64,000 nt of DNA from Scyliorhinus canicula (GCF_902713615.1 NC_052170.1:9348744-9412743); one strand, 5' to 3'. Counted from the first letter of the stretch, positions 53,501 to 56,500 are shown. Notes: generated by a model not told the origin, from the sequence alone. Translations and numbers: made by a program.

Positions 53501-56500
53501 GCCTCACGACGCCGAGGACCCGGGTTCGATCCCGGCTCCGGGTCACTGTCCATGTGGAGTTTGCACATTCTCCCCGTGTAGATGGATTGGCCTCGCTAAA
53601 TTGCCCTTAATTGGAATTTTTTTGTTTTTTAAATCTCAGTCAACTCATAGGTTCATCACCCGCTCCAGTATTTGGCCGTATAAAATAGGCAGATGCTTCT
53701 GTATAGAGCTGAGGGAGTGCTACATTGTTGAAGGAGAGAACAACCACACCATATAAAACAAATTCTTCACACAGTGAAACTTCCCAAGGTGTTTCACAGG
53801 GGCGTTATCAAACAAAAAGCATCTGAAACTGAGCCACATAGAGATAGATAGAGATAGAGAAATACAGCACAGAACAGGCCCTTCGGCCCACGATGTTGCG
53901 CCGAACTTTTGTCCTAGGTTAATCATAGAATTTTGGACAATTTGTCATGGCCAATCCACCCAACCTGCACATCTTTGGACTGTGGGAGGAAACCGGAGTA
54001 CCCGGAGGAAACCCACGCAGTCACGGGGAGGATGTGCAGACTCCACACAGACAGTGACCCAAGTCGAAATCGAACTTGGGACCCTGGAGCTGTGAAGCAA
54101 TTGTGCTATCCACAATGCTACCGTGCTGCCCTTAAGAAGTTAACCTACACTCCCTTATTCTACCCTAATCCAAGTACCTATCCAATAGCCGTTTGAAGGT
54201 CCATAAATTTTCCGACTCAACTACTACCACAGGCAGTGCATTCCATGCCCCCACTACTCTCTGGGTAAAGAACCTACCTCTGACATCCCCTCTATATCTT
54301 CCACCATTTATCTTAAATTTATGTCCCCTTGTAATGGTGTGTTCCACCCGGGGAAAAAGTCTCTGACTATCTACTCTATCTATTCCCCTGATCATCTTAT
54401 AAACCTCTATCAAGTCGCCCCTCATCCTTCTCCGTTCCAATGAGAAAAGGCCCAGCACCCTCAATCTTTCCTCGTATGACCTACTCTCCATTCCAGGCAA
54501 CATCCTGGTAAATCTCCTCTGCACCTTTTCCAAAGCTTCCACATCCTTCCTAAAATGAGGTGACCAGAACTGCACACAGTACTCCAAATGTGGCCTGACC
54601 AAGGTTTTGTACAGCTGCATCATCACCTCACGGCTCTTAAATTCAATCCCTCTGCTAATGAACGCTAGCACACCATAGCCCTTCTTCACAGCTCTATCCA
54701 CTTGAGTGGCAACTTTCAAAGAACAATGAACATAGACCCCAAGATCTCTCTGCTCCTCCACATTGCCAAGAACCCTACCATTAACCCTGTATTCCGCATT
54801 CAGATTTGTCCTTCCAAAATGGACAACCTCACACTTGTCAGGGTTAAACTCCATCTGCCACTTCTCAGCCCAGCTCTGCATTCTATCTATGTCTCTTTGA
54901 AGCCGACAACAGCCCTCCTCACTATCCACAACTCCGCCAATCTTCGTATCATCTGCAAATTTACTGACCCACCCTTCAACTCCCTCATCCAAGTCGTTAA
55001 TGAAAATCACAAACAGCAGAGGACCCAGAACTGATCCCTGCGGTACGCCACTGATAACTGGGCTCCAGGCTGAATATTTGCCATCCACCACAACTCTCTG
55101 TCTTCTATCGGTTAGCCAGTTTGTTATCCAACTGGCCAAATTTCCCACTATCCCATGCCTCCTTACTTTCTGCATAAGCCTACCATGGGGAACCTTATCA
55201 AATGCCTTACTAAAATCCATGTACACTACATCCACTGCTTTACCTTCATCCACATGCTTGGTCACCTCCTCAAAGAATTCAATAAGACTTGTAAGGCAAG
55301 ACCTACCCCTCACAAATCCGTGCTGACTATCCCTAATCAAGCAATGCCTTTCCAGATGCTCAGAAATCCTATCCCTCAGTACCCTTTCCATTACTTTGCC
55401 TACCACCGAAGTAAGACTAACTGGCCTGTAATTCCCAGGGTTATCCCTATTCCCTTTTTTGAACAGGGGCACAACATTCGCCACTCTCCAATCCTCTGGT
55501 ACCACCCCTGTTGACAGCGAGGACGAAAAGATCATTGCCAACGGCTCTGCAATTTCATTTCTTGCTTCCCATAGAATCCTTGGATATATCCCGTCAGGCC
55601 CGGGGGACTTGTCTATCCTCAAGTTTTTCAAAACGCGCAACACATCTTCCTTCCTGACAAGTATCTCCTCAAGCTTATCAGTCTGCTTCACGCTGTCCTC
55701 TCCAACAATATGGCCCCTCTCATTTGTAAATACTGAAGAAAAATACTTGTTCAAGACCTCTCCTATCTCTTCAGACTCAATACACAATCTCCCGCTACTG
55801 TCCTTAATCGGACCTACTCTCACTCTAGTCATTCTCATATTTCTCACGTATGTGTAAAAGGCCTTGGGGTTTTCCTTGATCCTACCCGCCAAAGATTTTT
55901 CATGCCCTCTCTTAGCTCTCCTAATCCCTTTCTTCAGTTCCCTCCTGGCTATCTTGTATCCCTCCAGCGCCCTGTCTGAACCTTGTTTCTTCAGCCTTAC
56001 ATAAGTCTCCTTCTTCCTCTTAACAAGACATTCAACCTCTCTTGTCAACCATGGTTCCCTCACTCGACCATCTCTTCCCTGCCTGACAGGGACATACATA
56101 TCAAAGACACGCAGTACCTGATCCTTGAACAAGTTCCATATTTCACTTGTGTCCTTCCCTGACAGCCTATGTTCCCAACTTCTGCACTTCAATTCTTGTC
56201 TGACAGCATTGTATTTACCCTTCCCCCAATTATAAACCTTGCCCTGTTGCTCGCACCTATCCCTCTCCATTACTAAAGTGAAGGTCACAGAATTGTGGTC
56301 ACTACCTCCAAAATGCTCCCCCACTAACAAATCTATCACCTGCCCTGGTTCATTACCAAGTACTAAATCCAATATGGCCTCCCCTCTGGTCGGACAATCT
56401 ACATACTGTGTTAGAAAAGCTTCCTGGACACACTGCACAAACACTACCCCATCCAAACTATTTGATCTAAAGAGTTTCCACTCAATGTTTGGGAAGTTGA

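Follow-up and report, generated by a model that had tools for sequence, protein, structure and literature searches.

The CR1-type retroelement described here probably represents a CR1-clade LINE lineage of catsharks that has its partner SINE built into the 3′ untranslated region (UTR), an assignment made from sequence. The window, that is, the whole 64-kb stretch of Scyliorhinus canicula DNA that was analyzed, contains one full-length SINE-bearing ("filled") element, referred to here as copy 1, as well as shorter relatives with and without the SINE (Table 1). A first-pass annotation of the window had described an intact CR1 element with a SINE between its ORF2 stop codon and its tail and TTAA on both sides, and precisely this arrangement was read in the sequence of copy 1. 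The 5′ limit of copy 1 was placed at the start of homology to a copy from Scyliorhinus torazame (L001, see below) and the 3′ limit at the end of the ATCT-type microsatellite, the extent being drawn also from self- and cross-BLAST comparisons. ORF2 terminates in GAT-TAG-GGT and contains Exo_endo_phos (residues 17-220, E 2e-20) and RVT_1 (residues 501-722, E 9e-36) domains. The embedded SINE is 93% identical (BLAST) to the free SINE at 4305-4501; its own hairpin tail has been deleted, only the terminal ~12 nt of the SINE end remain, and the LINE tail of 79 nt follows directly after the right TTAA.

Table 1. Coordinates of the SINE-bearing CR1 element and its parts, of related copies in the window, and of distant relatives in other records
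Feature	Coordinates	Strand	Remarks
Copy 1, full-length chimeric CR1 LINE	53840-58181	-	5′ UTR, ORF1, ORF2, embedded SINE, tail
Copy 1, ORF1	57056-57988	-	311 aa, open; SGNH/GDSL esterase domain (Lipase_GDSL_2, E 5e-14)
Copy 1, ORF2	54168-56954	-	929 aa from ATG, open; stop TAG at 54165-54167
Copy 1, left TTAA	54132-54135	-	TAA within it is the ancestral ORF2 stop, per empty copy 3
Copy 1, embedded SINE	53923-54131	-	209 bp, sense-oriented; head and part of body
Copy 1, right TTAA	53919-53922	-	Duplicated target
Copy 1, conserved 3′ hairpin of CR1 tail	53865-53903	-	7-bp outer stem, 5-bp inner stem
Copy 1, T-rich terminal stretch and ATCT/ATCTCT microsatellite	53840-53864	-	End of the element
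Copy 2, chimeric, 5′-truncated	7479-7947	+	Starts within ORF2; last ~170 nt of ORF2, SINE, tail
Copy 2, left TTAA	7646-7649	+	
Copy 2, embedded SINE	7650-7868	+	
Copy 2, right TTAA	7869-7872	+	
Copy 3, empty 5′-truncated relative	59657-60372	-	Single TTAA at 59722-59725
Free full-length SINE	4305-4665	+	Same subfamily, own hairpin tail; reference for the deletion
L002, ENA contig			Empty
L003, stray shark contig filed under Klebsiella			Empty; 89% at nucleotide level
L004, Chiloscyllium punctatum			Empty
L005, Stegostoma tigrinum			Two copies; empty
L007, Mustelus asterias			Empty

Membership in the CR1 clade is indicated by the coding regions and by the 3′ end. ORF2 combines an N-terminal apurinic-type endonuclease with a reverse transcriptase, and among the full-length relatives closest to it (38-79% identity) are unnamed and "jockey"-labeled proteins of turtles and alligator. 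An esterase-type ORF1, identified by its Lipase_GDSL_2 match, lies 5′ of ORF2; such an ORF1 occurs in part of the CR1 group, and a protein search returned homologues in many sharks and rays. The 10 LINE copies compared end without poly(A), in a 3′ hairpin followed by ATGTTCT- or ATCT-type repeats. At the other end of the element, the first unit of copy 1 is single (58150-58181), and the full-length S. torazame copy carries a tandem array of ~53-bp units (L001:7919-8343, at least 8 matches 53 bp apart); the 5′ UTR of this CR1 lineage may be monomer-like, as in mouse L1.

The SINE qualifies as a partner of the LINE in that its 3′ tail is homologous to the CR1 tail. A two-stem hairpin followed by a microsatellite could be aligned across 10 LINE and 6 SINE tails, with 97.4% of the alignment cells paired versus 31-47% when the partners were slid, and two outer-stem pairs showed compensatory changes when the LINE type was compared with the most frequent SINE type. 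The single-sequence fold of the copy 1 tail was no more stable than its shuffles (z -0.69), and the evidence for the hairpin is therefore the alignment. In copy 1, the structure lies 15 nt downstream of the insertion, which leaves untouched the only region common to LINE and SINE. In stringent-type LINEs, the shared tail region is the part recognized for reverse transcription (PMC3747384). Elements with a complete SINE have two hairpin modules in tandem, and the deleted form is without the inner module; loss of the inner hairpin may have removed a competing initiation site. Tails also differ among the free SINEs of the window: those at 20843-21184 (- strand) and 4305-4665 (+ strand) have head and body in common and differ in their tail hairpins, one of which is identical in type to that of a CR1 lineage (as in L002 and at 24712-24785 of the window) and the other diverged, with compensatory stem changes. 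The two tail types suggest, as far as sequence comparison goes, tail exchange or coevolution with different CR1 lineages.

Copy 2 is the 5′-truncated insertion on the opposite strand that had been reported as independent and as having the same SINE junction, and both points held. Copies 1 and 2 have in common the junctions, the SINE deletion, the GAT-TAG-GGT ending of ORF2 (already noted in the first-pass annotation and read here in each copy), the B-box changes discussed below, and the microsatellite type. The internal deletion that had been proposed as a shared mark is present in both, but its exact join, previously assigned to an AAATT microhomology, has no unambiguous position within the short repeat that forms the SINE end, and copy 1 has an extra 9-bp loss beside it. 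For each of the junction strings, the window has exactly two occurrences versus 0 expected by chance. Among metagenome and prokaryote-genome contigs, a search uninformative for shark, the strings had 0 real matches, L006 being a chance match in unrelated DNA. The close relative said to have a single TTAA and to read GAT-TAC-GGT was recovered with these properties as copy 3, which is 93.7% identical to copy 1 and lacks the SINE. Its ORF2 continues to a TAA inside the single TTAA; thus, the SINE inserted directly after the ancestral stop, which the duplication of 4 bp preserved.

Copies 1, 2, and 3 have no sequence in common in the 400 bp that flank them on either side, as expected of the distinct insertions that had been postulated. 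Segmental duplication or gene conversion was rejected on this ground as the means by which the filled 3′ end spread, and we assign it virtually no chance: copy 2 is 5′-truncated and ends in its own microsatellite, like retrotransposed copies, and a third filled locus lies on a chromosome record of another assembly. The window also contains two older empty CR1 3′ ends with 77-80% identity to copy 1, at 808-1357 (- strand) and 1354-2000 (+ strand). They form a head-to-head inverted pair joined at ~1355, which could reflect a twin-priming-like inversion or two separate insertions.

The third filled locus was reached through protein searches with ORF2, the C-terminal third of ORF2, and ORF1, in which a single protein exceeded 90% identity (P0004, annotated as a MINPP1b isoform in S. 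torazame); the remaining matches belonged to other CR1 lineages. The corresponding locus, L001 (CM105037.1, a chromosome record), holds a full-length CR1 copy with 93.8% identity to copy 1. In L001, the same TTAA is occupied by a complete SINE that retains its hairpin tail and terminal repeat and is followed by a second TTAA and the LINE tail. The 5′ part of this SINE is 97% identical to that of copy 1. Like empty copy 3, L001 reads GAT-TAC-GGT, and its ORF2 is broken. L001 is the intermediate expected if an insertion was followed by an internal deletion. In total, three filled loci, independent of each other, were read (copy 1, copy 2, and L001).

More distant relatives with 76-89% identity (L002, L003, L004, L005, and L007) are all empty, with the tail directly adjoining the ORF2 end; the equivalent site was readable in L003 and L004, each with one TTAA-like site. 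Because these relatives and the older copies in the window are empty, the filled state is derived, and so far it has been seen only in a ~94% identity group of Scyliorhinus-type elements, as judged from the sequences compared; 0/6 of the other CR1 3′ ends examined outside this group were filled. A 1-kb stretch occurs in 20 listed sequencing runs from 9 studies of one organism, and four runs that were guessed to be RNA, and may be DNA, contain 63-69% of its words.

This distribution also bears on whether the TTAA behind ORF2 is a hot spot at which SINEs inserted repeatedly, with L001 separate in origin from copies 1 and 2. No site in the flanking LINE sequence unites L001 with the other two, and the 3′ end of the SINE halts just before a TTAA-like motif, where microhomology could guide insertion. 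Yet the site, the orientation, and the SINE subfamily are the same in all three, the near-identity of the SINE 5′ part extends to L001, no free SINE bearing the internal deletion is present in the window, and the six other CR1 3′ ends examined from outside the group all lack the SINE. Recurrent insertion is thus very unlikely.

The divergence between the filled copies was examined for selection. Between copy 1 and L001, dN/dS was 0.288 over 927 codons of ORF2 (dS 0.108, dN 0.031) and 0.346 over 301 codons of ORF1. Dead copies drifting apart approach a dN/dS near 1; values well under 1 therefore indicate that most of the divergence between these two SINE-bearing copies arose in functional ancestors. 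The filled elements replicated under purifying selection, and since both the complete-SINE and the deleted-SINE forms left copies, at least two successive forms of the chimera produced offspring. The small number of filled loci, the broken ORF2 of L001, and pairwise identities of only ~93-94% among the filled copies would also be accounted for if a few copies had been made soon after the SINE landed, with no sustained lineage and with the ORFs of copy 1 intact by luck. We consider such a minor dead end unlikely, given that a dN/dS of 0.29 over 927 codons places the divergence mostly in replicating elements, that each of the two forms left copies, and that copy 1 retains 311 and 929 open codons.

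The tree proposed earlier as a check on common descent was informative for part of the group. Copies 1 and 2 are sister to each other (support 100/98), have three derived sites in common in the flanking LINE sequence, and both switched from the ATGTTCT to the ATCT type of terminal repeat. Over the last 650 nt of ORF2 and the tail, the relationships of copy 1, L001, and empty copy 3 are star-like: 15 derived sites are common to all three, 0 to copy 1 and L001 only, and 2-3 to each other pair. Constraining the filled copies to group together costs 1.6 log-likelihood units (p-AU 0.18), and they form one clade in 6% of bootstrap trees, so that, in these alignments, a single clade of filled copies is neither supported nor rejected. 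The star pattern is consistent with the SINE having inserted as a rapid radiation began. With the flanking sequence silent on the deeper node, a single origin rests on the common site, orientation, and SINE subfamily.

The unrelated flanks, the L001 intermediate, the empty outgroups, and the dN/dS of 0.29 favor the proposal that one SINE insertion founded a spreading chimera: probably, a SINE inserted once into a competent CR1, and the chimera then spread with the SINE as cargo and was later trimmed. A putatively tRNA-type SINE of ~330 bp, which would normally borrow the CR1 machinery through the common 3′ hairpin tail, would have entered a competent CR1 copy in the genome by retrotransposition, in sense orientation. 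Its landing site would have been the TTAA with the stop codon of ORF2 inside it, 15 nt ahead of the hairpin of the tail. Through the duplication of 4 bp of target, both the stop codon and the recognition tail of the LINE would have survived, so that the copy stayed mobile. The chimeric RNA would then carry the SINE between ORF2 and the tail, and all daughter copies would inherit it. The complete-SINE form seen in S. torazame would represent this stage; a later sublineage, to which copies 1 and 2 would belong, appears to have lost ~140 bp of the SINE, including the redundant hairpin, and to have gained the earlier TAG stop, the B-box changes, and the altered terminal microsatellite. What we infer is that there was one origin, that the lineage is active today, and that LINE-encoded proteins mobilize the very RNA that encodes them.

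The same order of parts could in principle arise at the RNA level, through template switches from the LINE tail to SINE RNA and back to LINE RNA in one retrotransposition. Template switching by LINE reverse transcriptase is known, e.g., from LINE-1 chimeras (bioRxiv 10.1101/2025.02.02.635956). Such a mosaic requires two precise switches, though, and an exact TTAA duplication around a complete SINE with tail and microsatellite is the normal product of a DNA insertion, which makes an RNA-level origin extremely improbable. TTAA duplication is also produced by piggyBac-type elements, around an element with terminal inverted repeats. A piggyBac origin of the TTAA was rejected, as the insert is without inverted ends, starting with a SINE head and finishing in a microsatellite tail.

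The embedded SINE differs from its free relatives in the promoter region. In free copies, GGTTCGATTCC resembles a B box and TAGCATTGTGG an A box. The SINE had been called tRNA-derived; the box-like motifs are present, but ARAGORN made no tRNA call in the SINE head and there was no Rfam call there, so that what points to a tRNA derivation is the A- and B-box-like motifs only. Separately, ARAGORN returned two 90-nt "tRNA-Phe (aaa)" calls of identical geometry at 33000-33089 (+ strand) and 50585-50674 (- strand) of the window, which are probably the heads of another repeat family and not real tRNA genes. The embedded SINEs of copies 1 (54017-54131, - strand) and 2 (7650-7764, + strand) have three substitutions in or beside the B box in common, the region reading AGTTCGATTTCGAC in both versus GGTTCGATTCCGGC in free SINE copies. 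The embedded SINE of L001 has a different change, at the first base of the B box. The pol III promoter may be decaying or silenced inside the LINE.

The window contains at least six SINE copies that are free and have tails of their own, and the claim that the SINE now moves in cis inside LINE RNA instead of in trans was thus overstated. The embedded SINE is a passenger and not a new SINE strategy. Whether it also serves as a nursery for new SINE subfamilies, by joining its head to the current LINE tail, is a more tentative and rather doubtful matter. Pol III transcripts running from the embedded head through the LINE tail would yield SINEs with a freshly updated tail, and the window does contain SINE subfamilies that combine one head with different CR1-type tails. 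This idea is weakened because no SINE-only copy with a TTAA-plus-LINE-tail joint was found in the window and because the embedded B box is altered. If true, it would account for the ability of shark SINEs to keep up with CR1 lineages or to change from one to another; an embedded head that fires would be a concrete route for renewal of SINE tails.

Several known systems resemble parts of this arrangement. L1 3′ transduction carries read-through cargo from downstream of the element, which marks all descendants. The present lineage likewise has non-LINE cargo marking its descendants; in contrast, this cargo comes after the ORF2 stop and before the LINE tail, upstream of the obligatory 3′ recognition tail and not downstream of the element, and it entered by insertion, so that 3′ transduction was set aside as an explanation. 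In the Okada/Ohshima model, SINEs reportedly arise from LINE ends, and Kojima (2018) is said to have described LINE parts in SINE bodies. The order of pol III head, body, and LINE tail is the same here, but a finished SINE went back into its LINE. SVA is a composite, nonautonomous retroposon and similarly consists of fused retroelement modules that move as a unit, whereas the element described here is an autonomous LINE with open ORFs. The V-SINE superfamily, finally, is marked by a conserved central V domain. Sharks and rays, S. torazame among them, have one of its members, HE1, for which HER1 is listed as the partner LINE (Ogiwara et al. 1999, via Table 1 of PMC3747384). HE1/HER1 and the present pair, likened here by description, each comprise a SINE of tRNA type (putatively so in the present pair) and a CR1-type LINE with a common hairpin-plus-microsatellite tail in the same host group; they differ in that the classic SINE is separate and mobilized in trans, while here a SINE copy lies inside the LINE transcript unit.

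With common-tail pairs, cargo-marked LINEs, and composite retroposons already classic, the chimera is not a new kind of element. What sets it apart is that a LINE lineage both autonomous and dependent on its tail has its own parasite on board, placed upstream of the tail used for recognition, and that this lineage is represented in three nested states. A full-text literature search of partial coverage returned no description of a LINE lineage with an embedded partner SINE. A tail-dependent LINE evidently tolerates an insert of structured foreign RNA, about 200-330 nt long, immediately before its tail while still under selection, and this tolerance bounds the region needed by the reverse transcriptase. 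The empty, complete-SINE, and deleted-SINE states provide a natural marker for dating CR1 activity and for catshark phylogeny. The arrangement also matters for repeat annotation: 5′-truncated copies will be scored as "CR1 fragment + SINE + CR1 fragment," inflating SINE counts and distorting age profiles. CR1-group elements make up 22-34% of the DNA in shark genomes (PMC13343379).

The database searches also returned shark CR1 sequences under other labels. CR1 ORFs are annotated as isoforms of host genes (MINPP1b isoform X1 in S. torazame and adenylate kinase 2 in Stegostoma), and shark CR1 contigs occur inside assemblies labeled Klebsiella pneumoniae, Carnobacterium, Proteus mirabilis, and Pseudomonas aeruginosa. 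The entries concerned are P0004/L001:10001-11896, P0121/L003, P0003, P0131, and P0242, and these labels look like annotation and contamination artifacts.
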